DNA of 64,000 nt, from positions 1,798,001 through 1,862,000 of the forward strand of contig CP075494.1 in assembly GCA_021613535.1 (NCBI GenBank), written 5' to 3'. Below, piece after piece: positions 7,918-61,066 of this stretch. Position numbers and translations under genes: made by a program. Position 1 is the first letter of the stretch. Each line of letters begins with the position of its first letter. Below the pieces are notes generated by a model. That model searched no databases, had not been told where the DNA came from, and was given only the letters and a program-made list of their open reading frames with translations. This DNA comes from Adineta vaga. Lineage: Eukaryota > Animalia > Rotifera.

Positions 7918-9180
7918 AAATATAAATATATTATTAAAATAATATTTAGTAACAAAAAAAGTATCTCAAACAATAGTTAGATGCTCTGTCACAGTTGGCA
8001 TGAGAATTTCAGTTGAGATTAGAATGCGCGAAAAAAAATAGAAAAACAAAAGAATAAAACATAGAAATAAATAAATAAATAAATACAATAGATAATAGAT
8101 TTCAAAAGAAAGAAAGAAGAAAAAAACTTCTTTTTTCCACCATATTTCTTTTATTATTAAATAGCAGAAAAATAAACAGTAATAGAAAATTATGAATAAA
8201 CATCGTTTTAAATAAGGCATTCAATTTACCTTACCATTGATTTATAAAAAGGATGCTTTATACATTTGTTTTCAATATTTCACAATTTATATCTTAATGA
8301 TACTTTTGAAATCATATTCTATGTACATATAAATAAATAAAATTATGATAAAATTGTATTTCAAAATATCCCTATGTTAAAATGCATTGAATCATCATAA
8401 TCCTATTTTTTTTCTGCTCAAATTGAAATCTCGTTCATTCGAAACCGACATGAACACATGTAACTATGATAACGATAATTAACTTAGTAACTACATACAT
8501 CATTTGTTTTGTCTTTCTTTTAACTCACACCCACACCCTCAAGATTACGGAAAAAATTAGTGATGCAAACGAGTAGTTGCGAGGAAAACGATTTGCTAAG
8601 TTCAGCTTTTTGTGATGACATTTCGTTAATTTTTATATGTTCAATGTTTTCGGATAGGCACAACCGACATGAACGAGAATGTCTCACATCAGTCATGGTG
8701 AAAAGAGAACTCCATCATGATGGTGCTTTAAAGCGTCTTTCAGCTGTTAATAATCTTCTATAGATACTCAAATCAACCATTGACGTTCTTATCTTTATCC
8801 ACATGTACTTTGTCACGTTATTGTTTCCTAATAGTTTAATAGCATATCGGATTTTTCGTTTTTCTCATTGGTTAGAAAGTACACGAAGAGTTTTGAAAAG
8901 ATTAAAACAAGAATGATCACGATGACACCGTAGTTTTCACATACTTGTGTTTATGTCAATTTTACATCGTTTCTTTTCTCTCTTCCCGTGTGCAAATAAG
9001 CAAGCAACGACTCGATGAGTTAGACAAACAATGTACTATGCCCATGTGATATACATCAATGCAAAACAGCGAGAAAAAACAACTGTTGTTCGAAAAACTT
9101 CCTCAAGTTTTTCCACACATTAACATCTTTTGAATATCTTCTATAATTTCCATTATTTTTAGAAGTCACATTATACAACG

Positions 9181-10705
9181 ATGGACATTCTTGTGGGTAC
9201 ATTCATTTTAGGTGTTATAGCATGTCCTTTAATTTATTTTCTACGTTCTAATCATGGCGATAAGTCATCCATTCCATATGTTACACATGAAAATTATCCT
9301 GTTGTAGGTCATCTATTTTCTTTTCTTCGTAATCGAACAAAATTTTTGATGGATTGTAAACAACGATATGGTCAATATTTTAAAATTCGACTTTTCAATC
9401 AACGTTTTACATTAGTACTCTCTCCACCTGACTGGGCTGCTATCATACGAAACCAATCATTTTACTTTCCAGCAGGCGATCTTGGGATGCAAATATTCGA
9501 TTTATCTAATAATTTGTCCGGTAGGTATCAATCTTTAACGTAATTTTGACAAACTAGAAAAATCTGCATATTTTAAAGGCCATACAGAATTTGATGCTGA
9601 AGCTCATCGACAGTACGTACAATATTTGAAAAATCGTGATGGTTTACGACCAATGATTGTTGAATTTGTTCGTCAAATACGCGAACTAATGCACCGTGAA
9701 AAAGTGACAATTGAAAATAATGGTACTATATCGGAGTGGATACCAAGTGGTCTATTAAAATTTAGCCATCGTATGATCTTTCAACCATCGACACTTGCAT
9801 TGTTTGGAGAGATCAATCCACTTTCGCTTGAGGATGATTTCCGTTTATTTGACGATAAATTTCATTATTTTAGCGCTGCTCTTCCTCGTTGGATGTATTC
9901 ATGGTTCTTCTCAAAAGAACTAAAAGCCCGTTCAAGATTATATAATTCATGGTTAGAAAAGCTATACCCACCTCGTGAGTCTGAGTTTATACGAGCTCGA
10001 ACAACACTTTTTTTGGCCAATTCTGAGTGGCTTACGAAAAAAGATCATGGCGCTATGCAAACAGCCATTCTATGGGCATCATTAGGCAACACTATTCCTG
10101 CCGTATTTTGGTGTTTGCTCTATATTTTACAAGATCCAAAAGCAGTGGAAGCAATTAAACAAGAAATTGACACGTATTTGCCAGTTTTTTCACTTGATAA
10201 TGATATTGATGATTCACTTATCGACGAATGGACCTCTGAACAATTAAACTCGTGTGTTTATTTGGAAAGTGCAGTAAATGAAATGCTCAGATTAGCTGGT
10301 GCAGCTTTGATGACAAGAAAATGTCAACGAGAGACTCGAGTAGTTTTACAAGATGGGCGTATTTTAAATGTGAAACCTAATGAGACTGTCGCTTATTTTG
10401 CTGCTGTAACTCATCTTGATCCAAATTTATTTCCAGAACCAAACAAATTTATTTTCGATCGATTTCTTAATAAAAATGCAGAGAGTGTTCCTGGTTTCAT
10501 GCCTTTTGGAGGTGGCAAGAGTATGTGTCCGGGGCGATTCTTTGCAAAAAATGAGATAAAAATTTGTCTTGCTATGCTTTTGCGTTATATGGAATACAAG
10601 TTTGTCGATACAGAAACAATTCCAACACAAAAACCACATCGTGTAGGATTTGGTGTTGCACCGCCTAGCCAAGATATACCAATTATGTATCGATATAAAA
10701 TATAA
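9181..10705 (+). CDS. Cytochrome P450, CYP7 clan (CYP7/8/39-like); exons 9181-9520 and 9579-10705
   Basis: N-terminal anchor; phase-1 intron 9521-9578 (GTAGGT..AAAG) joins the two ORFs in frame; I-helix WASLGNTIPAVFW as in CYP7; ExxR (EMLR); heme motif PFGGGKSMCPGRFFA. Confidence 0.92.
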
Positions 10706-13700
10706 TAGATTACATTCATAATATTATTTATATTTGTTGAACTGTATTAACATGATGCAAACATTTTACTTTTCTGTAGATAGATAGTATTTATTCAAGG
10801 ACACTCTATTAGAGCTATTAATACCCAAACAAACAAAATTTAAAAAAACGGTTAATTACACTTAAAATTTTAGCGAAAACAAAATCCGAAAAAGCGCACA
10901 TTTTGTTTTCACCCGTCGTTGATGTACCTATTTTTACCCGTAATCTATCAAGAAATTTTTACGAGTAACCCATCTACTCATTTTAACCATTAGCAATTCG
11001 ACGCAATTTAAGCCGTTCGTAACATACGTGTTTCTAACGCCTGAAAATGTGCGCTTTCCGCGATTTTATTTCCGTTAGTCTTTGTACGGCGCTTATCGCG
11101 TTGATATTAGAACCGTTTTAATCTTCATAAATTCCACGGTTTTCCCGCATCTGTTGTCCATCAAATTTGCAGATACCTTTTGGATTGGTTTTATCACGTT
11201 TCTTGCTCACCATACATTTCTTACGAATTCAATATCCAAAATCAGATATACGGCGCAGTATATTCCTATAGAAAGTATGCCACATATGCCGTATGCGCTC
11301 TATATATACATATACCTGTGCATACGAGTAAACTACCGAATATACTATTATCGATAACATACAGATTCATACGCGGATGTATTTACCTACTCACTGGTAC
11401 AATATAAGATTCAGAGATAATGGAACCAAAATCATCCATATGAACACCATTACGCGCTCCTACCATGGATCTGTGATCCTTGAAGAATGCGTTTTTCTGT
11501 TGAACTTGAAATAATAAACCATAGTTGTATGTATATAGGAATATAAATGAACGTACTTTATGGCCGAGGTGATCAATCTGGAATAATCTGAAAGTTGCTG
11601 AATGTGTGACCGAAATAAAAGTTGGATAGTGAAAAATTGTAGAAGGAAGTGCATTTTGAGAAACATGTCTTGAATTCTTTTATGTGTGGGTATGCATTGT
11701 ATTCTTGGGAAGATATTAATGCAGGAGTATGCAGTAGAGTTTACTGAAAGAGAAGAAGTTAGTTTCTCATCAGATGAGAAAGTAGCGTTATCTAAAAGAT
11801 ATTGATTGAACCTTCATCGAGAAAGTTCTCGTAAACTGATACCGGATAACATTGATTTATAACTTTCGTTTTAGTGAAGGAATAGGAATTCTCAAGTACA
11901 TGTATACCGATGTGTCAAGATTGCGTAAAATTATTACAGTCTAGTATTGTATTGTTGATGTGCTAAGGGTGGTATCACACACCTTTTTAAAATTTTCTGT
12001 CTGAACGGTTTTGAGTAAAATATTACATTTCTTGACAATAGCTAATTCTCGAAAATTTGAAACATCCTATCGATAGATCATGTACAAGATAGAAGTGTAG
12101 AATTGTTCTCATGCTCAAAGCTCTCGTAGTAAGTTTTGTCTATTTACTGCATCAATATAAAATTATTATTTTTAGTAGACTGAGTACTAATTCATCATTT
12201 CCATCATAAAGTCTCTAGTGAATCGATTGGTCAGAATAGTAACCATTGATTATATCGCAGTTCTGTATATACAATATATACTAATATATAATAGTATGTA
12301 AAACCAATAAACCAATAATAGCACAGAAAGTAAATAAATGGAATAAAATAGAATGGACTATGTTTGTCTAGGACAAACCATATAAGTTTCTTTTGATGAA
12401 ATCAACAAAATTGTACCCAAAGAGTACCACAAAGTTTTGTTAATATTCAGAGATATAAATGATGTAACACAGACAAGGATTTGTCTTTCCGTTGCATCAT
12501 TGATTTTTCTTGTCATCATTAGGTCTAAATTTTAATGAACGTCTGAAACTTCCATGCGTCATGTTTTAGATTATTGTTTGCTACATCGATTTTTACCGAA
12601 CTCAACAATGTCAAAGCGAAATTCGAACAAAAAGAAATGTTTCAAAACGAAATCACTCTACAGCAGTTCCTGTAATGGATCCTGTTAGTAAAGAACATGA
12701 AATGGCTCCTACATCAATAAATTCTTCAAATCAAAGTCAGAGCGAAAAAGATATTTCCACTCAAATTGATCCCGTAATGAAAAAAACAAAATAACATATA
12801 GAAGATTATTATAAAAATGTAAAAAAAAACGAAAAGTTAGTTCCATTATAATTAAAAAACTTTTGTGTAACATGAATTTCACTGTCATATTTATCGCTAT
12901 ATACTATTTCTACCAATAGAATCTTCATGTTATGCACTCTTTTTTCATTATAAAACAATCTAATACTATTCTACATTGTCAGTGGTTTAATATGATAAAA
13001 CAAAATAGATTTTCGTTCAAAAATGGAAAAATACGTTCATACTTGAACTCGTTAATAACGGGTGTCCCAGGATAAATGAGCCTCTCAGTATTTTGAATAT
13101 TTCTCTGCTATTATCTCATTGATTAGAACACTTTTTTACCAAAAGATAGCGCTTGGAATTCTCTACAAAACCATATATGAGGGTGTTGGTGTGGGTGAGG
13201 GTGAAGAGGATATACACCCACCCACCCACCCTCAAGAGCACAGTTTGTATTCATATGAGACATGTATGATTAAAGCTATTGGAAGTTGATTGTTGATCTG
13301 ATTCCAGACCTGTTTCACTGCAATATCTGCTGAACAATTCCAATATCTGATGATTGTGATAGTTTTTCTTCTTTTGTAATGAGTAATGGTGAAATGTGTA
13401 GAATTCATTAGGCATGTTGATAAGCGGTAGCAACAGTGTTTCTAATGACAAAGTGTACAGAACCCGAATGAAAAGGCATTGGCTACGATAAATATGTACT
13501 TTTGATCTTACTAAAAACTTTCTTCCGACAGAAAAATTGCGAAAATATTCAGAGAGGGTTCGTTTTCACCAAAACTGTACTTGTTCCTAGAACATGCAAG
13601 ATATTATACTATCCTTTATGTTTTTCATTTTCAAAATAATTTTTCCTGATTCATCACCATTAACGGAATTGAAAACCGCGTCCTCAGAGCGACTCTAATG

Positions 13701-15142: not shown

Positions 15143-16728
15143 ACATATTATATGTTATCTTTGTCATGTTTTCTTCGTCGTCTCATATATATCTCATTTT
15201 TAATCATAAAATAAAAAATGTATTTTAAAAATAAAACCTTTGAATATGGAAAGTCATTTCTAAAAATCAGTCGTTATTTCCCATCTTGAGAACTTGGGTA
15301 TATCTTCTACACTCACATCTATACCCTCACCCACACCCACACCCACACCCACCCACACCCTCAGCTTTGAAAGTAATGCAGTATACAGGTATTAACAAGA
15401 AAAAGTAATTTTATATCAAGACAAAGCTGTATAAAATTCACACTTTATAATCAATTTTTTTATTATAAAAGCTTATATATTATTGCATTGTTCTAAGTTT
15501 ATTTACTAGTTAGTTACCATGAAACGAGTTATGTCTTTCATCTGCGTCAGTTGTATTATCGTTATGTGTAACGATTTTTTAAAACCATCATACTATGCGT
15601 CATAGCTTAAGATCTAAGCAAAATAAATTCTAAGATTGTTAGTTCGTGATATCACTGAAATTTAATATAAATGTTTTCATATTCGTAACATGTTCCTTTA
15701 AACAAAATGTTTTTTTTTATTCTTCTCAACAGATAAAAATCAATGGTGCTTTTAGCATCAGGAGGAAGACAAAATTCAACAATCGAGCGAAATATTAATA
15801 TGAATTATTGCACAGCTAATTATATGAAGCATTGATATTTATATATATATATGAATTGTAATATGATAATTCACATATCTTAGTTTGTTATTGATTCATA
15901 TGCAGAGAATAACTCGAATGAATAGCACGAAATGTATATTTTTATTCAGGCTTCTTAATACAAAGTGTTACAGAAATGTACTAATGGAAAACAAATTTCT
16001 GTTTAGCTTCATTACAGCAAAATTACCGAGTTCTTTTAATAAAAATAAGGTTGTTCAACTGTTCAGCCGCTACCGTCATGGGCATCTCTGGTCTGTTCTT
16101 GTCTGTGTTTTGATTTAAATATAACGCTCGTTTATTTCTTTCCTCATATTTAAAAAAAATTAGAGAAAATATCTCATGATACTTGTGCAAAGAAAAAACT
16201 CAATGTAAAATAAATATTCACCTTTGGATTTTGGTTGCGTTGTAGTTACAACTACGCTTAACGGATGGCCCATTTTCCTATGTTGATTTTTAGATGAAGA
16301 AAATGCAAAGCACTGATTCTTTCTTTCCATTAAGAATGAGCTAACCTAGAACTTGACTCCAGCGATATATTTATTCAATGAACGGAAGAAAAGGGAAATA
16401 AAACAAAATTATAGTCGCTATAACAACACTAATGATAATCAGAATCAAAATACTAGCAGTAACAGCCATAAAAATCAAAACTTTTCTTTGACATACGACG
16501 TCTATTCGTTTAACCATCAAACATACTTACATGAAGAAATAAGAGAGCACACTCATTTTTTTTATACAAGTGTTACGATATAATCTCAAGAAAACAATGA
16601 TTCATTCAAGTACTCAAAAAGCGTCATGTTAAGAAAAAAAAACGATAACAAAAAAACAACATGCATTGTAATATAGATAGTATATTATGAAATAGTTTTA
16701 GTGTAATGCAAGTCATTTACATAAACAA

Positions 16729-18849: not shown

Positions 18850-20155
18850 CTTTTTGTATTAATTATATTTATTTTATTTTGGAATAAATTTTCAGGATGT
18901 AAATGAATGAGTGATACCATTTTCAAGATCTGGCGAGTTGTTTGATGCTCTGTACCGTGTGCTTTAGTGGCTAATTCAATTGCTTTTTTAAAGTGTTTAA
19001 TAGCAGACTCCCAGCTATTCGTTTTTGTACAGATTTGACCGAGTAATTGTTGACATTCTAAATGAAAACTATATTCATTTTCATTACTATTATTGAGAGC
19101 AAGTTGTAGGTTGGTACAAGCTTGTTCATATTCCTTAAGATTATGGTGAATAGTGGCAATATTATAATAAATGATACCTATCTCTTTTCTATCAGTATCG
19201 GGACATTTTGAATAACAATGTTGTGCTGCTATATATTGTCCAATCACTAATTGATTTTCTTCCCTATGATTATAAAGAACACCTAAATTATTATGTATTC
19301 TACCAGCGAATAAAGACTCTTTCTCCATTTCTTCATGTAAAAGACGTAAGAAGCGTTCGCGTGCAATATCAAATCGTTTAATACGGAAAAAAGATTTCAC
19401 AATATGTGCATATAAATCTTTGTCTGAGTCTGTCCTAGAAAGTGTTCGAATTATATCTAATGCTATGTGATCAACCAAAATCATTGAGAATGTCTCGTAT
19501 AATCTCTCACGAATTGGATGGTTCGGAGCTAGAGACGCATATTCAATTATTTGCTTGATTAATTCAGTGTGGTTAGATGGCAATGAACTTAAAAATATAG
19601 ATTCGGCTTTAAAGAATTGCTCGAGAGCTTGTGGTACATTGCTCATTAGAAAATATAAGAATCCGATACTGACGCAAGTTGTGGCAATCGATGGATGATT
19701 ACATGGCAGTAGTTCAAGTTCACTTTTTTTATAAAACATTAAAGCTTCTTGTAGTTTTCCTTTTTCTGTTAGAGCATTTGCCATGCCATGATAGATAGTA
19801 TGAATGAGTTCTAGTTCATTTACTTCGTTGTGTTTAAGGACAAATAGCGCATACCGATAATGAATAATTGCTTGAATGAAATTTTGTTTTGCACTATATG
19901 TCAACGCTATATTACTTTGAACAATAGCAAACCAAGGTGAAAAAATTCCAATAGTAGTTGCCGTTTCATTCAAAGCTTTATGATAATATTGCATGGCTGT
20001 ATCTAAATAGCCTTGTTGTCGACAAATTTCTCCGAGATTATTATAAATAACACTTATATCATAGTGAGTGTCAGGTAGTTCAGCTAATAATAATTGATAA
20101 AAATGTGTAGCTTGTTCATAGTCGCCAAATTTTGAGAGAAGTAAACCGAGTTCAA
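18549..20155 (-). pseudogene. TPR-repeat gene, 5'-truncated by a piggyBac end (probable C-terminal half of an ART-TPR gene)
   Basis: TPR motifs (NNLG, YNIA, HPSIATT). The frame continues upstream of the ORF-track ATG (LIELGLLLSKFGDYEQA..YNNLGEICRQQG) until the TTAA at 20156-20159. Confidence 0.8.
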
Positions 20156-20159
20156 TTAA

Positions 20160-20619
20160 CCCTCAAATGCCCACCTGGGGTCCGCACGGACCCCAACTAG
20201 TTTCATTCGAATGTTTTACACATGCGACCGCAGATTATATCGGACCACTGTAGATATGCTCTAGTGAAGACTAGTATACGTATATCATAGAAAGCATTCG
20301 CTTATCTTCTGTCTATGAGATAAATTACCTCAAAGTAATATATACGTTTATCACTCATCTGGGGTCCACTTGGACTCCATAATAAAACATTAGTTTCCGC
20401 TTATTATTTGATTATAAATTTTTCATTCTGATATTTTATACATTTGTCCGTTCCTATCAGAGTATTGTATAGCTATCTAATAAACTGTAAAGCATGTCAT
20501 TGACTTTAGAACATCATATTGTTTATATCTGAGTACCCTTACAAGCTATCTATTATTCTTCTAAATAATTATGTCCGCCATATAAAAGTTGAATATTTTA
20601 ATCAAGAATAATTCTAGCC
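20160..20619. mobile_element. Single terminus of a piggyBac-like element
   Basis: TTAA target followed by CCCTCAAATGCCCACC; palindromic TGGGGTCCgcacGGACCCCA; subterminal repeat CTGGGGTCCacttGGACTCCA at about 20359. The other end is missing and the fragment stops at a telomeric tract. Confidence 0.7.
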
Positions 20620-20729
20620 AGGGTGTGGATGTAGGTGGCGATGTGGGTGTGGATACTACATCTTTCTAATAACCACCCACACCCACACACCCACACCCAC
20701 ACCCACACACACACACACACCCTCAAGAT

Positions 20730-21183
20730 AGAACATATGGATAAATTAATATTTCCTCTTCTTCAGAAAATTTTGATCGAATTTCCATATGAAGTGCTGT
20801 ATATCGCTGATTGTGAAGGTGATATGTACAAAAAAGTGATATTTCATATTCATTATTTGAATTTGTCTCTTTAAATTGATTTAAACTTGGATGAAACATA
20901 AGTGATAAAAATGCTTGAATATCATCTTGAGTATGTGCTAAAATAACACAATTAAGTGATGTACAATAAAGTTTGAATTCATGATATGCATTTTTTGCCA
21001 TATTTTTTTTGATTTTCTTGGTAAATACACTTGAACATGTATAAGCATATAGAATATATTGAGGATCATCATAAGCACTTGCAAAATCAAAAGTTTCTAA
21101 AATTTCTTTCCATGTTTGAGGATCCTTTGATTTATCAATATTATTTAAATAACCTTTTTTTAATGCATAGATCGAATCTTTAA
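20730..21183 (-). pseudogene. ADP-ribosyltransferase (ART) domain fragment
   Basis: Exon after a CAG acceptor reads KDSIYALKKGY..ILYAYTCSSVF..HPSLNQFK..RSKFSEEEEILIYPY. The ExE-type motif is present; the R and STS motifs are not seen. It is cut by the ATCTTGAGGG telomeric tract. Confidence 0.6.
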
Positions 21184-21503: not shown

Positions 21504-21867
21504 TATATATGATTGCGTCTATTGATCACACAGAAAATCATTTCGTTGATTTCAATAATTAATTATTTTCACCTGAAATTATTAGATTAAGTTGTTTTAA
21601 TAAATGATATTATTGTATTTGATGAAAATTTTGAAAAGAATTCAGAAACAAAAAAAAACATATTGAAGATAAAGTGAATGTTGAAAAATTTCTATCTTGA
21701 GGGTGTGAGGGTAAGGATGTGGAAATAACACCATCACCCTCAACACCTGAAAAATTCTATATTAAAAATAAGGACGTTCTGTTCAGCCCGCTATAATCTT
21801 ATCTATAATAATCTCAAATGTCTGAGTTTGGAAAGTTGTTCGGTCCGTTGCATCGCTGCCCAACACC

Positions 21868-46306: not shown

Positions 46307-48200
46307 TTGAGGGTGAGTCAAGCTGCCATAACGCGTTTCGACCTTTTTCAAGGGTCTCATCAGATGGCTTAATTCTGAATATGATTACGAAAGACTTAGT
46401 CTACTTAAAGCTGAAATCAGATAGTTTTTGTCTTACCTATTTGTTGAAGAGCTGTGACAGATCATGGATGTCATGGTAGTTAAGAATTAAGCGTGTTGAA
46501 CTTGGAATGTCTTTGTTTGTATTTTGTTGTTTTGCGACGTAGGGTTTGTATGTATTTGTCTGGATAGACTTGCTACTGTTGGAGTATTGTTGGCTTGACT
46601 GGTGTTGAGATGTATATAGCTTGTATTGTAGTGAAGAATAAAGTGACTTGTATAGGTTATAGCGGTGTATTTGTTAAGAATATGTGCTATTATGTTTGCA
46701 ATAAGATGAATGATACTTACTTATAGGCAACCTAAGAAATGAATGTTATAATGAAAAAGTGCTTCGTATTTATAGGATGAGTTGAGAATGTGAACTTTGA
46801 TCTATGATACTGGCATTTATGTGTGGGCAAGAATTTCATCTCGTGTTTTACGTGATGAATGTTTGGAAGTTGGTATTTTAAGCAAAGGCGTATATTGTTT
46901 GTTTCGTTTAATAGCATTTGAATATGTGAAAAAATGGAGAAAGAATGTCTTCAGGAGGCGTATGAAAGTATGTTCTTGCTACGTGAAATTATTCTTATAG
47001 AGAAATTCACTTTTTTTATGGAATGAGTGCATACAGGAAAATTTTGTGTAAGAAAAGGTAAAGCAGATATCATGGAAGAAAGAGAAAGATAGTGATTAAC
47101 TCTACATACATGTGTTTATTGATTTGTCTGCACTTGATTGATTTTTGTCATTTTTCATTGTGTGAAAGACTGATTCAATATATATATATATCAAAGATGT
47201 GAAAGTATTGAATAATACATTTGTTTAGAAATGACATCCTAAGTATTGGAGTAAAACATTAAAATCATCAAAAACAAGTAAGTAAAGACATACATTCTAA
47301 ATGTTTTCTTTCAGATGCATTATATGGTATATTTTCGTTTATTAAATTCAAGTATGAACTGGTTGAATGCAAATCAATTGATATGTATGATTCAAGTTGT
47401 TTATGTGATAGTTATAAAATATCTAGAAGGAAAAGAAGAAAAATCAGATAATTTCTTTTTATTTTATATAAGCAACAGAAAAATGATGATATGGGATGGA
47501 GAAACTTCAGATAAATCGATTTATACTTGAGCAATATTATAAATCAATAGGAAATAAGGAAATTTTGAAATAAGCGTTTATCCTTTGGTTTTTAAATTAT
47601 TCATTAGAATCTATTGTTTGTTACGAACGATTCTCGATGTTGAATCATGTGGCTAGCCGATGCTGTTTGTCATAATTTGCCCGTTCAATCATATGCAATC
47701 GACGGTTCTCTATAGCATCATATACTATGTTTTGCCATTCTGATGTTGATTGCATATATCTATTCTTTAATAAAAATTTCTTTCGTTTAGTTTGTATTAT
47801 TGTACTCAAGTTTTCAATTTTGCTATGACTAGCAAGAATGGCATGATTAATGATATTATTCTTTAAAGTATTTAATTTATCAACTTCATATGTTAAAGAA
47901 TCACTAATTATAGTTGATTTCATAGTTTCATTCCATTTTTGTATATCTTTATCAATATTATTGATCATTTCATGAACTAAACTGGATGTTGCTTGTAATG
48001 ATGTTGATGAAAGACGTTTTTCTAACAAAGCAATATCTTCTTCAATCATCATTTGTTCTTTTGTTGCACGCCATATATGTGTTGCCAAAGTGATCTGTAA
48101 TTGATATAAATTGAAAAGACATTCAATTCAATAAATAATACAGTTTAATATATATTTACGTGATTCTTGTTTGGGTTGACATTGTAAAAATTTTGAATTA
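46307..48200 (-). mobile_element. Deleted Athena/Terminon-like retroelement: coiled-coil ORF fragment plus 3' hammerhead and telomeric end
   Basis: ORF 47645-48088 is a coiled-coil resembling Athena ORF1 (family assignment from recall). The 3' end carries a 62-nt GT-AG intron-like segment (46436-46375), a hammerhead, and the tail ACTCACCCTCAA. Confidence 0.6.
46325..46368 (-). ncRNA. Minimal type I hammerhead ribozyme
   Basis: GCCAT-CTGATGA-GACCCTTgaaaAAGGTC-GAAA-CGCG-TT-ATGGC: intact core, stem I GCCAT/ATGGC, palindromic CGCG stem III typical of Penelope-like-element hammerheads. Confidence 0.88.
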
Positions 48201-48412
48201 ATTGATGAATCAGTGTGAAGCTAGCACCACGAAGCTAGCACCGCGAAACTAAGAGTTTTGCGAAAACGAATTCCCGTCGATAAAAAAGAGTCTATTCGAT
48301 GCAGAATTTGATTCTGAGTCGAATGGTGACATTTTTATTCACGGAAAAACGATAGGAAAAAAGTTTTCTTCGATCTTTATTTGTCTTCTATATGTGTATA
48401 TGCGTCATTGTA

Positions 48413-48729
48413 CGACATTCGGCACGCAATTTCTCTGCACAAAATGAACTCCCGTCCATGAAAAAGAGTCTGTTCGACGCAAAATTCGATTCTGCATCGA
48501 ATGACGGTACTTTCATTCACGGGAAAACGAATGAACAAATTTTATTCGAATTTTTCTTTTACATATGTAAGTATGAGAGGAAAATAAAAATCGAGGTAAG
48601 CTTCGTCCTGATCGTTTTCCCGTGAATGAAAGTACCGTCATTCGATGCAGAATCGAATTTTGCGTCGAACAGACTCTTTTTCATGGACGGGAATTCATTT
48701 TGTGCAGAGAAATTGCGTGCCGAATGTCG
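48413..48729. mobile_element. MITE with about 118-bp near-perfect TIRs
   Basis: CGACATTCGGCACGCAATTTCTC.. mirrored; flanked by TA (48411-12, 48730-31). A diverged half-copy of the same family lies at about 48265-48360. Confidence 0.9.
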
Positions 48730-48731
48730 TA

Positions 48732-49972
48732 TTAGGTTGTCAACAAAGTTTTGGCGTTTTTTTCAAAAATTTTATTTTTGTTTTTTCACTTCAAAAGTAC
48801 AACTAGTTCTCAGATATATATTGACCATTACTATCTACCACTTGTCGCCAACGTTCTGGCAGAGACATGATCCCGCGCTCGTAGAAGTCTTGGGATTTTT
48901 CATCGAAGAACTTGACAAGCTCCATTTTGACACCGCTTTCGTCTTTGAACTTTTTATCACGTAAATCATTCGAAAGAGAACGAAACAAATGGTAGTCTGT
49001 TGGAGCCAAGTCCGGAGAATAAGGTGGATGAGGAACCGTAATACAGCCAAGCTTCAATAATTTTTCACGAGTCGACTTTGCAATGTGTGGTCTTGCGTTA
49101 TCATGTAAAAAATAAACTCGATCCTGCTTTCCTTTGAGTTTCTCTGCAACCCGATCCAATTGTTGACAGTACAGATCAGCAGTGATGGTGTAACCATTTG
49201 GTAGAACTTACCAGTGGATAACTCCTTTGATACCCCACCAGACGCTCAGCATCAATTTCTTGGGATGGAGATCAGCCTTCGGTGTTGCTACGCCGGTTTG
49301 ACCAGCGCTCAGCCACTGACGTCGACGCGTGTAGTTAACATACAACACCCACTTCTCATCACCAGTAATCAGATTGGATAACCATTGGTAGTTGCGGTGA
49401 GATGTGATTAAATCCATACATGCATCAACTCTCTGTTGCAGCTGATGTGCCGATAATTCATGAGGTATCCATACCCCATATTTCCAGGTCTTGCCTAATT
49501 CGTTCAGATGTTTTTCCACCGTAGTATGAGAGCACCCGACCTGCTCTGCTAAACACCGTAAAGTCAGTCGAGGATCTTCTTCGATAAGCTGCTTTAAAAA
49601 GTCCACATCCACTTCCATTGGTCTACCAGATCGAGGTAAGTCGTCGAGTTCTAAATCGCCATTCTTGAAATGATTGAACCAACGTTGCGCGGTACGAGTG
49701 GAGACTAGACCCTGACCCATCGTGCCGCATATGTTGCTGGCTGCTTCCGTTGCTTTGTGCCCCAAACGAAATTCATGAAGTAAAAGCACCCGAATCTCTC
49801 AATGAGAAAGATTTATTTCTGATTCGACATCAACGTCCATATCGATGATTTTTTTATCATTCGAAAGACGTTCATGTCCTATATATATACACTTAGTATG
49901 GAAACTTCTAGAACTTTCTAGGTTATTCTACAAGATTTTAGAAAAAACGACAAAACTTTGTTGACAACCCAA
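48732..49972 (-). mobile_element. Mariner (DD34D) transposon, full length, transposase inactivated
   Basis: 31-bp TIRs TTAGGTTGTCAACAAAGTTTTGGCGTTTTTT (2 mismatches); TA TSDs; transposase 49840-48803 with WIPHEL, GDEKW, HDNARPH and YSPDLAPTD; in-frame stops at codon 14 and at 49208-10. Confidence 0.95.
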
Positions 49973-49979
49973 TAGATAA

Positions 49980-50024
49980 GCCATCTGATGAGATTCTTTA
50001 GTAGGAATCGAAAATAGTCATGGC
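49980..50024 (+). ncRNA. Minimal type I hammerhead ribozyme followed by reverse telomeric repeats
   Basis: GCCAT-CTGATGA-GATTCtttagtagGAATC-GAAA-ATAG-TC-ATGGC, then AGCGGACTCACACCCACACCCAC (to 50046). GUC cleavage triplet. Confidence 0.82.
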
Positions 50025-50229
50025 AGCGGACTCACACCCACACCCACGACTATCAAAAATACAGAGATATAAGCTATTCGTTTTTATTAATTAATTTCTT
50101 AGAGATGCATTGAGTCAAAGATATCTATATAGAAACGATTTATCCTTATTAAAATACGGCATGCGTGTTTTTAGGATTATACTTGGATACTAAAATAATT
50201 GTATCAAACCTCAAAAGTTGTTTATTATG

Positions 50230-51245
50230 TTAATTTCTTTGAAATAATGAGTACAATTCTGTACTCTTCAAAACAGTGTCATTTTTCGATCCACCAATAA
50301 CTAACACTTTTCCATTCGTTAATACGGATGCAGTGTGTCTTTTTCGTATATCATTCATACTATTAGTAATTGTCCAAATCGCTGTTGATGGATCATACAA
50401 CTCAGCACTATTTAGATCACCATCATAATTAGTTCCACCAGTAACTAACACTTTTCCATTTATTAATACGGATGCTGTGTGGTCTGCCCGTGCATTATTC
50501 ATATCACCAGTAGTTGTCCAAAGACCTGTTGATGGATCATACAACTCAGCACTTTTTAGAACACCACGACCGTATCCAGCAGTGACTAATACTTTTCCAT
50601 TTGTTAGCACGGATGCTGTATGCTGATATCGTACATAATTCATACTACCAGTTGTTGTCCAAAGGCCTGTTGATAAATCATACAACTCAGCACTGCTTAA
50701 AGCACTACCACGACCATTATTTCCGCCAGTAATTAGTACTTTTCCATTTGTTAATACGGATGCTGTATGATCAAATCGTGCATCAGTCATGTTATTAGTG
50801 GTTGCCCAAGTCCCTGTTAATGGATTATACAACTCAACACTGTTCAGAGAAATATTCTGATTATGTCCAGCGCTAACTAATACTTTTCCATTTGTTAACA
50901 CGGATGCTGTGTGCCCGTATCGTTCATATTTCATACTACCAGTTGTTGTCCAAGTCTCTGTTGATGGATCATACAATTCAGTATTGTTTAAATAACGAGT
51001 ATTATCTCCACCAATAACTAATACTTTCCCATTTGTTAATACGGATGCTACATGCCTCCAGCGTTGATATTTCATACTAGCAGTTGTTGTCCAACGGCCT
51101 GTTGATGGATCATACAACTCAGCAGTGCTTAAATATGAACCAGGATTGCCAGCAAAGCCACCAGTAACTAGTACTTTTCCATTTGTTAACACGGATGCTG
51201 TATGATAATGTCGTATATTTATCATGCTACTCGCATTAGTCCAAC
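50230..51245 (-). CDS. Seven-bladed Kelch/galactose-oxidase-type beta-propeller, terminal exon
   Basis: Seven highly similar R..HTASVLTNGKVLVTGG..L.SAELYDPSTG.W repeats; TTTAG acceptor at 51246-47 (phase 1). Confidence 0.88.
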
Positions 51246-52284
51246 CTAAATAGAAACATTTGAATGTATTCATTCTAGGAAAAATATATCTGGATGAACT
51301 CCCAAGATTCTCTGATCATGTATGAAATATTTTAGATCTTGTAAAAAGTGTTACAATTCTTTCAAGAAGTTGTTCATGAGGAGGTACGACAGTAAGCCTT
51401 AAACTTTTTCCTAAAGAATCGCACGCGTGAATAAAGAATAAATTAGATTTGCGTTTTCTATCTGTTGTTACAGGATTTATACAAACTAATGCACTTTCGA
51501 TTATATACAGTGGCTTTCTTTAATAGTTTTAAATTACCATAAAATCTATCTCAATCGTCCAAGTCTTAAAAAAGCAATCAAAATTCTTTCGAAGTATCTT
51601 AAGGGCCCCCTCACCCTATGGTATACATTTTTGGATTTTGGTTGCTCTGGCTGTTTTGAACCTTCAGATTATACAGTGCTGCTGAATTTTTTATCAGATA
51701 TTTACCATATGTCGGGCATCTTGCACTATAAATTTCAGCCCTTCCTATTCAGTCTAGCTTGAGATACAGTGGCAACAGATAACCTCACTGTATTTGCCAA
51801 ATTTCTCCGTCGTTCGGAATGTTGAAGAATTCGGACTGGTCTCAAAATGTAGCCCTGAGCTTGCGCTACAATCCTACAGACTCCAATCTTTCTCGTCATG
51901 TTCTTTTTTATTTCAACTCAATCCCATCTAATAAAAAAAATAGTCAACGGTAGTAAAAAACGAGTTATTTTCTCAGTTTTTACTAGATAGAATTGAGTTG
52001 AAATAAAAAAGAACATGACGAGAAAGATTGGAGTCTGTAGGATTGTGCTTCAGCCGACCTGAACTCAACATATGACGATGGAATCTGTTGCCATATCTCA
52101 AAACTGAATAGGAATGAAAAAGCTATATCTGATAAATAAATAAGCTATAAAAATAAACATTTCGCTAATATAGAAATAAAAATCAAAATCAATAAGAGAC
52201 TTTATGAGTTGTCTAGTTATAATTATAATATAGACGGACATTCAACAGTCATATATGACTTATAAAATAAATAGATATTAATAC

Positions 52285-54148: not shown

Positions 54149-57100
54149 TTACCTTAGAAGAATAAAAATGAAATAACGAATCATTACTCTAATCATGGCT
54201 TGTATTGAAATGAGGCAGTATCGTAAGGATGCTTCTTTTTTATGTCTGGTATTCAGATGGCATTGTAAGCTGCATTTCTCCAAATCGAAAACAGCACAGT
54301 CTAATGCTTTGATAATTGGAAACTCGATATTGGTCTTATTGTTTTTAACGTACGTATATCAGTCCGCGAGAAATATAATTTTCACGGAATAAAACAGACA
54401 AATGAGCACGTGATGCGCGCAAGACTAAAGCTTTTTTTATTATCGTTCTAAAATAGAGTTTTCTGTTACCTTAATTCTTAAATCGTCAAATTAACGGTAG
54501 ATGAAAGATTCGCGTCACCGCATCTTGAGAGTGTGTATGTGTATGTGTGGGTGTGACGGTGAGGCTCTTTTGTTGAGTGACACCCACACCCACACCCGCC
54601 CTCAAGATGGGTTGTGATCGTTGGATTATTAATCTTAAGAATGTCATTGTTCCTAAACGAAATTTTATGTCATTTCTATGGGAGCGTACAGATATCAAAG
54701 CTAAAAAGTCGAAAATATATATTCCGTTCAACTATCATCTACATATGCCAATTAGTCCGCTCGATAATTCTCTTCCTCTAACCAATAATTCTTCATCGCA
54801 AACAGAGAATCACGATAATCTAACTTATTCACATGATGATTGATATAAACTTAATATTTACAATGTTTAAAAATAGGTTTCTATCGTGACTGGTCAATTC
54901 GTCGCAGAATAAATTAGCTGTAACAAGATTAACAAAATATGCAGATAGAGGGGGAGAGATAAACCTCTCATGAAAATGATTATGTTTGTAAAAAATAAAC
55001 AACTAGCGGGCATACCTGCTGCAAATTAAGATATACTCACATGATAAAACATCGCAAGTTGACAAATGATAGGAAATGTAGTTGTGAATATTCCTAACAC
55101 TGAAACTGTGTCAGATTCCTTCTTTGGATTTAGTTCTACAGAAGTATTTATTAAGATTTTTGACTAATCTGGATTTATTCTCAGAATCACACCCTCACAT
55201 CCACTCACCCTTCAGGTCTGCTGTAAATCTCATTCACACCTTTATCTTACACCCTTACTCTAAGAAAACTGGAATTCTAGAAGACTATTTTGGGTTTTGT
55301 ACCAGTGTACTGAATCTGAATAGCTTCAACAGATCATCGTTTTATTCTTTTTGAGTTTAGTAAACCATCCAGGTCGAAGCGGGTACATCGGATCTTGTCG
55401 GTTCACATGACACATAATCCCTGATCAATCCGATCAATAACCGGTGATAGGAACGTGTCGGATTCTACAAAGATGTAGAAGTTCCGTTGATCGGATTTTC
55501 TTTGTATCGTATGAAACAGATCCGACCGGATCAGCTGCTGGTGCACATCGGAACTAATCAGAAACTCGTGGATATATATAATTGAACTGATTAGCATACT
55601 GTCAAAGAGATAAAATGGTCTGATGTGATTGAAATTTTATTCCGATACATTTTTTGGAACAAAGTTAAATCTAATGATTAACACGTTGATATCTCAATCA
55701 TGTATGTCAAGAATTACTAAATAGAAGTAAGTATGCAAATAGTTGCTGCTTATCGAAATAAATATAGCTTTAACAACTTTCATACAACAAAAAACCTTTC
55801 AAAATATATTTGACTTTTGAGTAATGATAAAAAATAAGCAAATTGGTTTTTTGTTGTGATAATCTTACAAAATTTCTGATAACTGAAATGAACTTCCTAT
55901 TGCTTTATGTAGATAAAGACCACTGTATACTCTATTGAACATTGGACTATGATCACAATAACAAACTGATAAATATAAATGATGGATTTCTTGTTGGTTG
56001 CTAGAAATTGATGGCGGTTGACTAGTCTTAATAATGCATTAAAACTTATTAAGCGCTCATAAAAACAAAGATGAAATTCATCGTTAATCTTAAACAATGA
56101 TATTTAAAATCAAATGAGAAACTTCCTTTTTCGATCAGTTTCGAAGAAATTTCCAATGAGTTGTTATTTAAATATTTGATAATGCTATGATATCTTATGA
56201 CGAGTTGCTTGTGGACACCTATTGTAATTGTGTTGAGGGTGTGGGTAATACACTTCTCTTCAACTACACCCACACCCATCTTTACTTTTTTAAATATATT
56301 AAAATTAATAAATGAAAATGTTTATCGTATTTCTATGAAAACATACGCTTGTATTCATTCAATAAATATTCTTAATATATTATTAACAATGGAAAAAGAA
56401 CGAATAATTTTAAATACATCATCTTTATCATTTTTCTCAATAGTTCATAATTGTTCAGGAATATTAGAACATTATCTTATTGAATATCTTCAACAAATTC
56501 ATATTGAAAATCAAATGGAAAAGATTTTAAAAGAAAAATATTTTATTTCAATTAAAATTATATAAATATTCCAATTTACATTATTCTGTTAATAATGCAA
56601 TAGAAATACTGATAGAAGATCATTACTCATTATTTTTCGAGAAATTTATTATTTATTTCTGTAATAATTTATGTTTAGAATTGATATTTGATGATTATGT
56701 AGATATACTTTAGGATCTTTCAAAATCTAATATCTATTGATAAGGAGAGATTTATAGATGCACTTTGTAAAGGTAGTCAAAAAACAAGCAATATATTATA
56801 TTTAGGTTTATGTTCTTCTTTTAGTGAACTTACAGATGAATTTGTTAAAATATTGATAAATGTTATGGAGAAGAAAATAAAACTGATAGACAAGCATTTG
56901 AATTTTATTTTAGTAAAATCAAAACAATATCAAATGAAAATGTTATAGAAGATTTATTCAAAGAATTTCGATTAATTTTTTTATTTAAAATCGATATTTT
57001 CTATTCGAATTTTAGAATTCTTTGTTTGTTTTGTAGAACAAGATTTCATTTCTATGTTAGAAGTTATAGATCATTTATTGATTGTAACTAATTATAAATT

Positions 57101-59146
57101 CGATGAATATGATAAAACAATATTTAATAATGAAAATGATCCTTTCTTTTGCATTATGAATATCAGAAATTTTAGTTTCCCTAGAGATTGTAATGATGAA
57201 ATTCAATTTTTATCTATGGAAGATATTTCATTAAAGAAGTTCATCATTTATTATTATAATCAAATCTTACATCTGCACTTATCATTTGAATATTATCTGT
57301 GTTTTTTTTAATATACTTTTTTAATGTAGTAATTCATTTATTTTTATGTTTGTTTTATTTATGTTAATTGTAGATTTTAGTCTCATAACTAATCTTCTTT
57401 ATATAGATTGATGAATATAAACAAACTTGAGGATGCGAACTAAAGAGAAATATACACTCACCATTGAGATGATATATTATTAATAAAACGAGAATAATGA
57501 ATCTTATGTAAATAAAGAAGTAAAAATTCTGATTTAAAATTAGTCCTAATACAAAACAAGACTGAGTGGATGTTGGTGTGCGTTAGGAGTTTCAGTGAGG
57601 ATATACGTTTAATGAAAACTCGCACACCCACACCCTACTAGAGATTAATAGTAGGATTCATCAATACGTAATTGATACAAATTTCAAATGTTTGATCATT
57701 TTATCTTTGTTTACGTGATATTAAGCAGTTAATATCGTTTTCAACAAAAGTAGAACTATACGTCGTATCGAATTGAAATATTTCTTCAGAGTGAAGGTTA
57801 GGGTATGACTGAGGATGATTTTGTTCTCATACATACGAACACCCTTTTCAATTTCTAACCGCTTTTTTCCTGATGTATTTTTTTCTTTCAATCAAATAAA
57901 TCTTAGCTTGTGGGAATGCAGTATGATTTGATTGCTTTTCACATCTAAACTACCACTCGTATACTTCAGTAAAAAGAAGCTAATATCATATACGAGAGAT
58001 ATAATAACTTGTTATTTAAATTTGTTTCTGACTAAAAGTGAAATTCTTTTGTTTTTTGTCAAAGTTGAAAGAAATAAACAGTTCAAACCTAATTTTATAG
58101 TACGTTTTAAAACTGTATGACGACTGGAAATTAATTTAATAGTAAATAAATATTGTCTACCAAACATAGAAACCGTAACGTTAAATATTTTAGTATGTTT
58201 CTTTTCTATTATAATTGCATAGTCAATAGAAATTATCATCACCTTGTTATTTTAAACAGTATTTCAAAGAACATAACGAGTAAGAAAATCATATACTCAA
58301 CATTTCATATCTGATAACTACAAGTAAAAAACTGTTTCCTTATATAAATGAATGTTTTTCTCATTAATACTTTTAATTTTCTTCTTTATTTTACTTACAT
58401 ATATATTCCTGTAAGATGATAAAGAGAATGAGTAAGAATATACTTTGATAAATAATCAATTTTTCTGAGTTTATATTTATATAATGATTTAATTGTTGTA
58501 CTAATCAACTCTCCTCAATTTCCAAGCCTATTGTTGTACGTTTAATGACAGAGCTTCTTTTCTTTCTATTCGTAATTATCATACCTAAATTATGATGATA
58601 TCTTCCAATGAATCGATCTTCTACACTTAATCCATATTCAGTCTTTTTTCTGAATAGGTGCGTTCATTTTCCAAGTTTATCGGATATGCATAACAGTGCA
58701 AATAGTAAAATGATTTGGCAAAAAGTTTCTTTTTTAAAATGAGTTTTTTCTTATTAGCATTTTAATGACTATTGCGTATATATTCAAAATGAAAATATTA
58801 AATATATATACTTACATAGATAGAGTTAACTTGGTAAAGTCCATGAAAACTAATATCGTTGCACACACATTTACCAAAAATAATTGCATTTATTCAACTC
58901 ATTATTGTTCAACAATTAGCATGTATTATTTATATAAGTTTCACGCGATTCTTTTGTTTATAGCGCTTATTTGGATCTTTGATTGATACATATTCTGTAT
59001 ACTGTTATGATAGAATTATGTGCGAGAAAAACAGTACTAATCAAATTAACTACATTTGCATAATCATGTCATATTGAAATAACCAAAAAGATAAACTATT
59101 GAGTTAATAAACATACCATATTTTTAATTTATTTCTAGCAGGAAAC

Positions 59147-60307
59147 ATGCTTGGAATTATAAATAAATTTTGGAAAAAATTTAAAAAATATATACAAAAT
59201 TTTAATTTATTCCCATCTCTACCACCATCACTTGATCAAAATCAACTCACAAATGAAATTATATCAACAAGAGTGTTCATTGTTTTATTCATATTATCAT
59301 TAACAATTCTTATTTTATATACATCATTGATAACTATTACAAAAACTGTCACTATTGATTCACCATCTCTTACAACATATTCACAATTATATTCTCAATA
59401 TTCAGAATCGTTAATATGTCCATGTGAAAAAATATCGATTGAATATGTTAAAATGCTTACTATTAATTATACAATACATCAAGTATGTTCAAGTTATTTT
59501 ATTACTGATGAATCGATATATGATTTTCGACCGGAACGCTATAGTTTGATGGCGAATATCGACTTTCGCTACATAGGCTTATGTGCTTTTCAAGGACTGA
59601 AGGAATTTTGTGGTTTAATTAAGGAAACAATTTCTAATAATTTAATTGATTTTTATTCAACTCAGTATATGAGTTCATCTGTCGCTCCGATTGATTTATT
59701 AGAGTCTCAAATTCTTACATTTACTAAACAGTTTGAATGGTCGGCTAAAACAAGATTTGCAGAATCTCTTTTAATCATCCGAAGTACAACTCATAGTAAT
59801 GGTTTAATCATGATCCATCAATCAAATTACTATCTTTTCGTTAGACCTCCTAAGAAACTTGTTCTTCCAGAACCGCAGAGTTACGACTCCTGTCTTTGTG
59901 ATAGTAGAGCTACATGCCACTTAGAAGCTTCTATTTATCGATATCCTACCATAATAGAACAATTTACAGTACCAGGTTTTTATCAAGGATGCGTACCTAT
60001 TGAAGCATTACTTCAATCTACTCTTGAATGTTTCTTTGATGATTCTTGTATTCAACAAATAAAACCTCATCTAGCATCATCTTCAACTATACAAATACAA
60101 TCTCTTAATTCATCCTCATTAACTAACTATCACGAGAATTCAACAATCAATGATATTATTTATATAGTAACTACAATATTTGGATTGATTGGTGGTTTAG
60201 TTACAGTTTTGAAATTAATCATACCACAAATAATTCAATTCATCTTTGATTGCATTCGAAAATGGAAAATGAGAATCATTGTGGTGAGACCGTTCAATGA
60301 CAATTAA
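59147..60307 (+). CDS. Two-TM membrane protein with Cys-rich ectodomain (expanded rotifer family, function unknown)
   Basis: TM after ISTRVFI; CPC..HQVCSS; CLC..C; PGFYQGC..EALLQSTLECFFD..C; C-terminal TM YIVTTIFGLIGGL. Confidence 0.75.
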   Translation: MLGIINKFWKKFKKYIQNFNLFPSLPPSLDQNQLTNEIISTRVFIVLFILSLTILILYTSLITITKTVTIDSPSLTTYSQLYSQYSESLICPCEKISIEYVKMLTINYTIHQVCSSYFITDESIYDFRPERYSLMANIDFRYIGLCAFQGLKEFCGLIKETISNNLIDFYSTQYMSSSVAPIDLLESQILTFTKQFEWSAKTRFAESLLIIRSTTHSNGLIMIHQSNYYLFVRPPKKLVLPEPQSYDSCLCDSRATCHLEASIYRYPTIIEQFTVPGFYQGCVPIEALLQSTLECFFDDSCIQQIKPHLASSSTIQIQSLNSSSLTNYHENSTINDIIYIVTTIFGLIGGLVTVLKLIIPQIIQFIFDCIRKWKMRIIVVRPFNDN

Positions 60308-61000
60308 CTATTTTATAAACAATAATTATATTTTATCTTGAGGATGTATTCTGAAATCGTTTTCTTTTGAAAAAAATATGCCAATTTTCATTACAAATTT
60401 TAGTAATGCTTTTCTGTTTGAATAAAATATGTGGAGATGAGACTTAATCACAACTACATTTAAATGACTAGCATATTTATATGAAACAATGAACACAACA
60501 TTCATTGATAATCTTGAAAATCTCGAATATTATTTGTTTTTAAGAGTGGATTTGAATATTGTATGCATTTCATATTCACACTCACCTTCAATTGTGTTGT
60601 CAATAAATATTAGAATTATGATTTTCGTCTAAATGATATGACTATTTATACTCGTTGAAAAAAATCTTCTACACTGCATCTGTAAATGATCTACTAGAAC
60701 ATTCAAAGAAAAGTTTTCTTATAATAATACTTTGAAATAAATGAAAGAGACTTTATTTCGTAGTTTTTCTAATGTAATCATGCAGATGTTTCTTTTCTAT
60801 TCACATAAAGTTTACTTGTTTTACCCACATTGTTAATTCAGATGCAAGCTTTTTATTTCTATCGTTTCTTTTTAAAAAAATCCAAGAGACTTTCTAACTA
60901 ATTTTTTCTTCTTATGCATACAGGATATGTCATAATGACATATATACGTAAGAGAAACATTAGTTACACTATTTGTTTTAATTTATCTAATAAATAGAAT

Positions 61001-61066
61001 ATCTTGAGGGTGTGGGTGATGGTTTTGGCCTTTTTTTTATCTCACCCACACCCACACCCTCAAGAT
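61001..61066. repeat. Perfect mini telomeric palindrome ATCTTGAGGGTGTGGGTG..CACCCACACCCTCAAGAT
   Basis: 18-bp perfect inverted repeat around a short unique spacer; no TSD. Type example of the dispersed family. Confidence 0.9.

Follow-up and report, generated by a model that had tools for sequence, protein, structure and literature searches.

Endonuclease-deficient Penelope-like elements (PLEs) of the Athena/Terminon type are the closest described counterparts of the repeats considered here. The 3′ end of Athena/Terminon elements carries a hammerhead motif followed immediately by (ACACCC)n or (TCACCC)n (PMC6431247, PMC8557442), and endonuclease-deficient PLEs prime at exposed chromosome ends or double-strand breaks (PMC3846280). 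PLE insertions typically contain head-to-head inverted terminal copies with palindromic junctions, an arrangement ascribed to self-priming, and host DNA can be caught between the terminal repeats (PMC3846280). For Adineta vaga, a bdelloid rotifer, interspersed TGTGGG tracts have been counted under "telomeric repeats" and read as marks of subtelomeres or of old fusions (PMC8494291, PMC7943196, PMC13564844). Analysis of a 64,000-nucleotide stretch of the A. vaga genome (C5:1798001-1862000, termed the window) shows that most of these interspersed tracts are structured hairpin modules, located at joints between unrelated segments. In its complete form, a hairpin comprises a G-rich arm that opens with the fixed motif ATCTTGAGGG, a short spacer, and a C-rich arm that closes with CCCTCAAGAT. 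No description of this motif or of inverted telomeric hairpins in bdelloids was found in the literature searched; an earlier one may exist in Gladyshev and Arkhipova (2007) or in Arkhipova et al. (2017).

The window is located on contig 5, 1.8 Mb from one of its ends, in an assembly of 100.8 Mb and six contigs. The larger sample, totaling 321 kb, consists of the window, 200 kb at the far end of contig 1 (the C1 sample), and ten paralog loci. An initial annotation of the window had interpreted the tracts as scars of internal breaks, both ends of which would be extended by telomerase and then rejoined.

Architecture and Orientation of the Hairpins

A symmetric scan for 18-mers with at most three mismatches to (TGTGGG)n detects 17 tracts in the window and none in a shuffled sequence. 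Telomere-type tracts are present at all 15 coordinate ranges of the initial annotation, and the scan adds a hairpin absent from that list at 57566-57637. All of the listed tracts are real, but those at 25605, 26122, 38792, 46307, and 50031 are solo 3′ tails of longer units and not half-hairpins, and the tract at 55188-55212, which does exist, is weak and forms part of a duplicated segment.

The fixed boundary proposed for the tracts is borne out. In the window, ATCTTGAGGG occurs exactly three times and CCCTCAAGAT exactly four times, and with one mismatch allowed, the boundary 10-mer has 15 matches against 2.5 expected. Genome-wide, the 16-mer ATCTTGAGGGTGTGGG has 474 matches (232 + 242), which concentrate toward contig ends, and its reversed control has none. 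When the ratio between all arms and perfect 16-mers is extrapolated, the genome total comes to approximately 4,000-5,000 arms.

The order of the two arms is nearly absolute, as the initial annotation had stated. Tract pairs no more than 60 nt apart in the 321 kb are G-then-C in 49 cases, CC in two, GG in one, and C-then-G in none. A genome-wide check of orientation returns 67 matches to TGTGGGTGTGGG-N0-30-CCCACACCCACA and two to the reverse order, both of which derive from one site at which two elements abut. Equal frequency of the C-then-G order, named beforehand as evidence against head-to-head joining, is thus not what is observed (67 vs 2 genome-wide, 49 vs 0 in the sample). The elements are 42-227 bp long, with a median of 56 and spacers of 8-49 nt. 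Their hairpin folding potential is strong (z about -6 to -7), and an Rfam search of the window returned only sub-threshold miRNA-family matches, which are due to the hairpin shape.

The two arms of one element are unequal in repeat number and in variant units, and the outer motif is lost in nested steps. Among 129 arms, 32 retain the full ATCTTGAGGG, four lack one base, six lack two, and approximately 24 begin at TTGAGGG; the remainder start further in, within the repeats. Such nested loss of the terminal motif is expected for a copied template end. Elements in which both 10-mers are perfect number only 29 genome-wide (gap range searched, 25-55 nt), compared with the 474 perfect single ends. 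The reported lack of a target-site duplication (TSD) now extends to 15 elements with defined ends, the flanks of which share 0 nt (nine elements), 1 nt (four), or 2 nt (two), the level expected by chance. In addition, the hairpins avoid open reading frames (ORFs) of at least 150 aa: 2/55 and 0/13 are located inside such ORFs, whereas 15 and 5 are expected.

Hairpins at Joints between Unrelated Segments

Homology breakpoints coincide with seven hairpin or tail edges, and at three of these the paralog reads through without a hairpin. One series is found between 54522 and 57382 of the window. Hairpin H1 (54522-54608) has an exact right end and a left end, ATCTTGAGAG, that is one mismatch from ATCTTGAGGG. 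It is followed by segment A (54609-56232, + strand), a copy of C3:18596828-18598597; the match as a whole (54609-56277) is 98% identical and begins at the first base after H1 (...CCCTCAAGAT|GGGTTG). The C3 paralog contains a 407-aa ORF that crosses the H1 cut point without a hairpin and has weak ART-like similarity (BLASTP E 0.025 to the ART gene of the window), and the window sequence left of H1 is unrelated. Hairpin H2 (56233-56278) is common to the window and the C3 paralog. Both of its edges are breakpoints, and more distant paralogs run past the left one. In the window, the C arm of H2 is shortened and joined to segment B (56278-57382, + strand), the paralog of which on contig 6 (C6:12916254-12917903) runs on upstream with no hairpin. 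At this junction, 56277/56278, the repeats of the C arm meet the break without the fixed adaptor.

Similar patterns are observed outside the window. The right edge of a hairpin at 1365-1533 of locus L023 is a breakpoint, as the two 94% paralogs of the adjoining sequence continue differently, and match coordinates indicate a right-edge breakpoint of like pattern for the hairpin at C1 sample 59237. Two truncated mariner copies also end at these elements, one at a tail and one at a hairpin. No paralog alignment spans any hairpin. In the unbiased subset formed by the window and the contiguous sample, 16 alignment endpoints fall at hairpins or tails compared with 4.2 expected, several of the 16 being ends of tail-bearing repeats. 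Of the four junctions examined, three fall within 2 nt of a hairpin's outer end and not inside the hairpin.

The initial annotation had also claimed that several tracts sit where a gene or transposable element is cut. This holds for a MACPF gene fragment cut at 46306: its ORF (45935-46360, - strand) covers only profile positions 106-214 and begins inside the tail unit at 46303-46375. The supposed ART fragment at 20729 was not confirmed by Pfam or BLASTP; Pfam gave no match for the ORFs cut by H1 and at 20729, and BLASTP of the 20723-21001 ORF to the window ART gene was null.

The hairpins at 57566 and 61001, as well as the junction at 56233-56342, recur in Logan contigs of four public runs from three studies that were compared with 55200-61199. 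Observed in four independent runs, these structures are not assembly artifacts. Joints listed in the Logan contigs were set aside as cross-matches between hairpins of different loci, and an exact protein look-up for two neighboring ORFs found no allelic contigs on record.

Units That Share the Tail End

The fixed end ...CCCTCAAGAT, or a one-base variant of it, is the terminus of units with a hammerhead-like motif just upstream. Two such units of approximately 70 nt are present in the window, at 46303-46375 (- strand) and 49977-50050 (+ strand), facing away from each other. In each, GCCAT-CTGATGAG-stem-CGAAA-six bases-ATGGC leads into a short linker and then a C-rich tail. The unit at 46303, whose tail ends CCCTCAA, abuts the MACPF fragment; the unit at 49977 immediately follows a mariner copy (48730-49974, with 39-nt terminal repeats), starting next to its right inverted repeat. 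Three further hammerhead-like units are found in the C1 sample, and in two of them stem I reads CCTAC...GTAGG, a compensatory change. The core over all units is GCCAT/CCTAC-CTGA(T/A)GA-stem-(C)GAAA-ATGGC/GTAGG, then the C-rich tail, and in a predicted consensus fold, stems I and II reappear around the invariant cores. The identification rests on the core motifs, the covarying stem I, and this fold; because Rfam models do not score the units, they are called hammerhead-like.

The termini of these units are CCCTCTAGAT at C1 sample 98813-98897, CCCAAGAT at C1 sample 182883, and CCCTCAA at window 46303. The pattern CTGATGA...CCCACACCC...CCCTCAAGAT has two genome matches and one in environmental contig L073. 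The variant CCCTCTAGAT is common to the unit at C1 sample 98813-98897 and the tail at 26122, which is the 3′ tail of a further unit (26122-26200, - strand) and is preceded by ...ATGGCAGC. The hairpins themselves contain neither a hammerhead nor a coding part.

The same kind of tail is present on a second type of unit. The repeated unit at 25605-26121 (- strand) contains a tRNA-Thr-like sequence at 25778-25850 and a C-rich tail at 25642-25605 with terminus CCCTCAA. This tRNA-Thr(GGT)-like unit exists in many copies, 76-92% identical, with the tRNA-like part 136 nt upstream of the tail (window 25605-26191, - strand; L010:8490-8790). It looks like a SINE-like passenger on the tail type of the hammerhead-bearing units, so that the tail is shared by noncoding passengers. 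Every longer unit seen with the fixed end in the DNA examined is a tail unit of hammerhead type or tRNA-like type.

Spacers of the Hairpins

The initial annotation held that spacers differ in each copy. This is correct for the two best-preserved and young-looking copies, at 61001-61066 and 54522-54608, the spacers of which have no other genome match within 3 mismatches in 28 nt; such unique spacers argue that there is no master copy. Many other spacers belong to recurrent families that occur in both orientations at unrelated loci, examples being ...CTATACTCTTAA, ...TACTACATCTATCTAAC, and the purine-rich ...GAAGAGATA. Recurrence of this kind had been named in advance as evidence against the telomerase model. 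Some spacers are similar to the linker that separates hammerhead and tail in the longer units, one case being the H2 spacer, ...CTTCTCTTCAACTA, beside ...TTTCTCTTCAATATAAT of the unit at C1 sample 98813.

Hairpins in Environmental Contigs

A scan of metagenome contigs for ATCTTGAGGGTGTGGGTG returned at least 120 contigs, of which 80 (loci L031-L110) were examined. AT-rich contigs (GC <0.44) make up 58 of the 80, many with the same hairpin structure, and the rest are GC-rich chance matches. Tract pairs in the AT-rich contigs are GC in 36 cases, GG in seven, CC in three, and CG in two. Here, the motif is extended to ACTATCTTGAGGG: the three bases before it are A in 32/58, C in 28/58, and T in 33/58 (the upstream-base count took 57 contigs with GC <0.42), a preference indicating that the conserved end is 3 nt longer in these contigs. 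ACT precedes ATCTTGAGGG in about half of the AT-rich contigs (e.g., L064, L069, L080, and L093), many of which are from a few related JGI samples. Only two environmental contigs end in an array begun by the motif and two run off in the opposite sense, which is not informative on telomere seeding.

A Model for Hairpin Formation

We tentatively favor, with less than even confidence, the reading that the hairpins arise by endonuclease-independent reverse transcription of a tail-bearing RNA at both ends of a break, the products being joined head-to-head. The template for extending broken DNA ends would be an RNA ending (CCCACA)n-CCCUCAAGAU-3′, putatively the 3′ tail type of endonuclease-deficient, telomere-associated PLEs (Athena/Terminon). 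A free 3′-OH at the break would prime at or near the very end of this RNA, in which case the added DNA would begin with ATCTTGAGGG and continue through TGTGGG-type units, varying in number, and sometimes into a few bases copied from the upstream RNA linker. The other end of the break, or an end of another break, would be extended likewise. Joining of the two short cDNAs head-to-head would then often link sequences not previously neighbors and, without duplicating the target, would yield flank | ATCTTGAGGG(TGTGGG)n - spacer - (CCCACA)nCCCTCAAGAT | flank. The enzyme and the RNA template of this scheme are, like the joining of the halves, components that we infer.

Reverse transcription at both ends would account for the fixed outer ends, the nested starts, and the variable, unequal arms, as well as for spacers that are linker-derived or unique, the missing TSD, the unrelated flanks, and the solo tails. 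It would also account for longer versions, such as the outward-facing pair 46303 / 50050. The core of the earlier proposal, that break ends are extended and then rejoined, is retained in this reading: the lack of a TSD, edges at which homology stops, the G-then-C order, and best copies without a master all agree with it. Telomerase as the agent is not supported, given a fixed end shared with hammerhead-bearing units, recurrent spacers, and nested terminal loss.

Several observations weigh against reverse transcription at both ends. The published Athena/Terminon model has the tail anneal to telomeric overhangs, whereas the tail here abuts non-telomeric DNA. Rfam hammerhead models gave no match to the proposed source units at E up to 1 on the window and up to 10 on 49900-50100. 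No PLE reverse transcriptase is present in the window; its only reverse transcriptase (27551-28996) sits beside an AP-type endonuclease and thus belongs to a non-LTR element. A search for CTGATGA 25-55 nt upstream of the CTATRCTCTTAACCC spacer had no genome matches, nor did a search for a hammerhead source of the H2-type spacer, with a pattern so strict that it missed even the related unit at C1 sample 98813. Two common spacer families, for which these searches gave no hammerhead-bearing source of the same linker, may therefore be copied in the form of whole hairpins. At C1 sample 52964, the flanks of the hairpin are colinear with a paralog, like those of a plain insertion or an in-place repair. 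Over 55200-61199, the Logan contigs of the four runs contain no hairpin-skipping allele and no de novo event. Finally, the paralog loci were picked for matching window segments, which biases part of the endpoint statistic for hairpins and tails (25 observed vs 6.3 expected).

Beyond the origin of single hairpins, it is conceivable, if somewhat unlikely, that they reflect a routine bdelloid pathway of break capping and bridging, in which a conserved template RNA, either a retroelement tail or telomerase-like, would be copied onto both break ends, adding the fixed adaptor and telomere repeats before each end is joined to its partner or to some other fragment. If so, the thousands of hairpins would constitute a readable ledger of past double-strand breaks, and subtelomeres could acquire gene fragments, transposons, and foreign DNA in the same way. 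If the hairpins record break repair, the signature flank | ATCTTGAGGG... can be searched for in irradiated, desiccated, and mutation-accumulation lines. How bdelloids stabilize and rejoin chromosomes, assemble subtelomeres, and perhaps take in foreign DNA would thereby become testable, and the known role of endonuclease-deficient PLEs would extend from chromosome ends to internal breaks.

Alternative Explanations

The hairpins could instead be a nonautonomous mobile unit that propagates itself, whether a DNA element of foldback or MITE type or a hairpin RNA of which the whole is copied. Such a unit would integrate in one piece and leave no TSD, with a preference for breaks, and would promote rearrangements afterwards. 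Inverted terminal repeats whose 10-nt end is fixed, thousands of arms genome-wide by extrapolation, and a motif conserved among environmental contigs would suit such a unit, as would the single insertion-like case at C1 sample 52964 and the recurrence of spacer families at unrelated loci; the main point in its favor is the pair of spacer families without a hammerhead-bearing source. Against it, none of the 15 elements has a TSD of constant length, no autonomous partner was seen in the DNA examined, and the longer units with the same end look like retroelement tails. A master copy is further disfavored by the unique spacers of the two best-preserved hairpins, and a unit moving as a whole is at odds with the scarcity of elements perfect at both ends (29 compared with 474 perfect single ends), the variation in arm repeat number among members of one spacer family, the nested terminal truncations, and flanks that are usually unrelated where paralogs permit a test. 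We therefore regard a mobile hairpin as unlikely, and the case of the initial annotation against an ordinary MITE is upheld: the absence of a TSD, the breakpoint position, the orientation, and the unique spacers of the two best copies fit addition and joining better. Were the hairpins nevertheless a TSD-less mobile family, they would be among the most numerous repeats in a genome known for few transposons.

Telomerase-mediated addition of repeats to both break ends, followed by ligation, shares with reverse transcription of a retroelement tail the head-to-head order, the missing TSD, and the position at breakpoints. In that case, the far end of the template in telomerase RNA would supply the fixed ATCTTGAGGG, and a template ...ACUCCCACACCC... 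would also account for TGAGGG units being frequent next to TGTGGG. Conservation of the motif across environmental contigs is what a template would show, the repeats at 56277/56278 meet the break without the adaptor, and telomeric repeats at deletion breakpoints have been reported in A. vaga lines (PMC13564844). We consider this agent improbable all the same, as the same end closes the hammerhead-bearing and tRNA-like units, where it is part of a longer copied RNA, which is not what a bounded telomerase template would give. Spacers that recur and resemble linkers of hammerhead-bearing units, a terminus that is 3 nt longer in other organisms, and discrete shortened classes are likewise not in its favor. 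No telomerase RNA was identified here, and pure repeats from the break are not the rule, 32 of the 129 arms having the full ATCTTGAGGG and approximately 34 more having shortened forms. Still less probable, to the point of being very remote, is that the hairpins serve a cassette system as recombination sites, like the attC sites of integrons, or are simply fragile palindromes, exchange or breakage at the hairpins shuffling the segments between them. Palindromes that are imperfect, conserved at their outer ends and variable at the center, placement between genes (2/55 and 0/13 in ORFs of at least 150 aa), and duplicated segments that end at hairpins would be expected of such sites. The paralogs that are the sources of segments A and B and of the L023 segment, however, run past the matching boundary without a hairpin, so that these segments are not cassettes bounded by sites at both loci, and integron-like cassettes were rejected on this ground. 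Moreover, three of the four junctions are at an outer end and not within the palindrome, and no recombinase is linked to the hairpins, none being seen among the window proteins.

Other Features of the Window

The remaining hairpins and tails differ in their degree of preservation. The best-preserved hairpin, at 61001-61066, has both ends exact and a fold of -36.5 kcal/mol. In its loop, a TT length polymorphism of the T-run at 61030, present in contigs of two runs, behaves like a small microsatellite. At 13178-13237, a G arm, a 9-nt spacer, and a C arm are flanked by a left end cut back to TGAGGG and a right end CCCTCAAGAg. The hairpin at 15283-15363 has a decayed G arm (ATCTTGAGAAC...) and a clean C arm of 45 nt, and that at 57566-57637 is decayed, with a spacer of 34 nt. 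A short hairpin at 21694-21743, located 3′ of a GST gene (21868-22707, - strand), has an exact left ATCTTGAGGG and ends CCCTCAA on the right. The largest hairpin (35258-35484) is composed of a G arm of approximately 60 nt, a 10-nt spacer, and a C arm of approximately 155 nt, and both fixed ends are missing. Solo tails are present at 8524-8545 (+ strand), with an exact CCCTCAAGAT end and no recognizable G arm upstream, and at 38792-38810 (- strand), with an exact outer ATCTTGAGGG and non-telomeric sequence inward.

The hairpin at 20620-20729 has a spacer of the TACTACATCT.TCTAA family and an exact right CCCTCAAGAT. Copies of the repeat on its left flank stop at 20613. Two copies of this repeat (window 19828-20613), at C6:893630-894338 and C3:2133757-2134472, have a hairpin approximately 180 nt past the same end, and the repeat family may carry a hairpin in its own end.

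The window is AT-rich (32% GC), with a gene mix that is typically subtelomeric: UDP-glycosyltransferase, P450, LRR, TPR, GST, LDL-receptor/EGF, Kelch, and ART. Its mobile and fragmentary content comprises a non-LTR retrotransposon, hAT and mariner fragments, and the MACPF fragment. Directly beside the mariner copy at 48730-49974, large inverted repeats with 120-nt arms, 99% complementary, occupy 48263-48731. A tandem array at 50289-51215 (144-bp units, 6.4 copies) is the Kelch-repeat coding part of ORF 50230-51273 (- strand). A near-perfect 169-nt inverted repeat at 51873-52041 is unrelated to telomere repeats and is probably another small palindromic element; plant miRNA-precursor models match it below threshold on both strands.

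Comparison with Known Systems

Similar to MITEs and foldback transposons, the hairpins are short and noncoding, have terminal inverted repeats, are dispersed in thousands, and have strong hairpin potential. Unlike these elements, they are seen without a TSD or a transposase partner, their youngest copies are unique, their truncations are nested, and their flanks are mostly unrelated. Interstitial telomeric sequences (ITS) of primates and rodents and fusion scars such as human 2q13 are internal telomere-type repeats tied to break repair, and fusions are head-to-head. In contrast to the hairpins, ITS and fusion scars are not known to have a fixed non-telomeric adaptor, recurrent spacers, or a terminus in common with a retroelement. 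Endonuclease-independent LINE-1 insertion, reportedly described by Morrish et al. in 2002, and cDNA capture at double-strand breaks, said to have been observed by Teng et al. in 1996 and by Moore and Haber in 1996, offer a further parallel: retroelement cDNA patches pre-existing breaks, with no TSD and with truncations, deletions, or rearrangements. The hairpins differ in that priming apparently takes place at both ends, the end of the template resembles telomere sequence, and subtelomeres contain such events at very high frequency.

Terminal repeats of PLEs (pLTRs) resemble the hairpins in that both outer ends are element 3′ ends, often with a palindromic inverted junction and sometimes with no TSD (PMC3846280). 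The main differences are that pLTRs are 180-220 bp long, belong to endonuclease-bearing elements, and usually have 8-10-bp TSDs, whereas the hairpins are 42-227 bp long, contain telomere-type repeats, and have no TSD. With respect to Athena/Terminon, the hairpins differ in lacking a hammerhead and a coding part and in having two tails that face outward. The tail here also has an extra fixed end (TCAAGAT), and its ATCTTGA adaptor abuts non-telomeric DNA instead of telomeric overhangs. The canonical Athena/Terminon model predicts a C...C order, and the order observed is G...C (49 vs 2). In common with Athena/Terminon, a hammerhead-type motif is placed directly before reverse-complement telomeric repeats in the units at 46303-46375 (- strand) and 49977-50050 (+ strand) and in three C1 sample units. 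Priming on exposed DNA 3′ ends or double-strand breaks, which is proposed for the hairpins, subtelomeric location, 5′-truncated copies, and host genes caught between units are likewise features in which Athena/Terminon elements and the elements described here are alike (PMC6431247, PMC8557442, PMC3846280).

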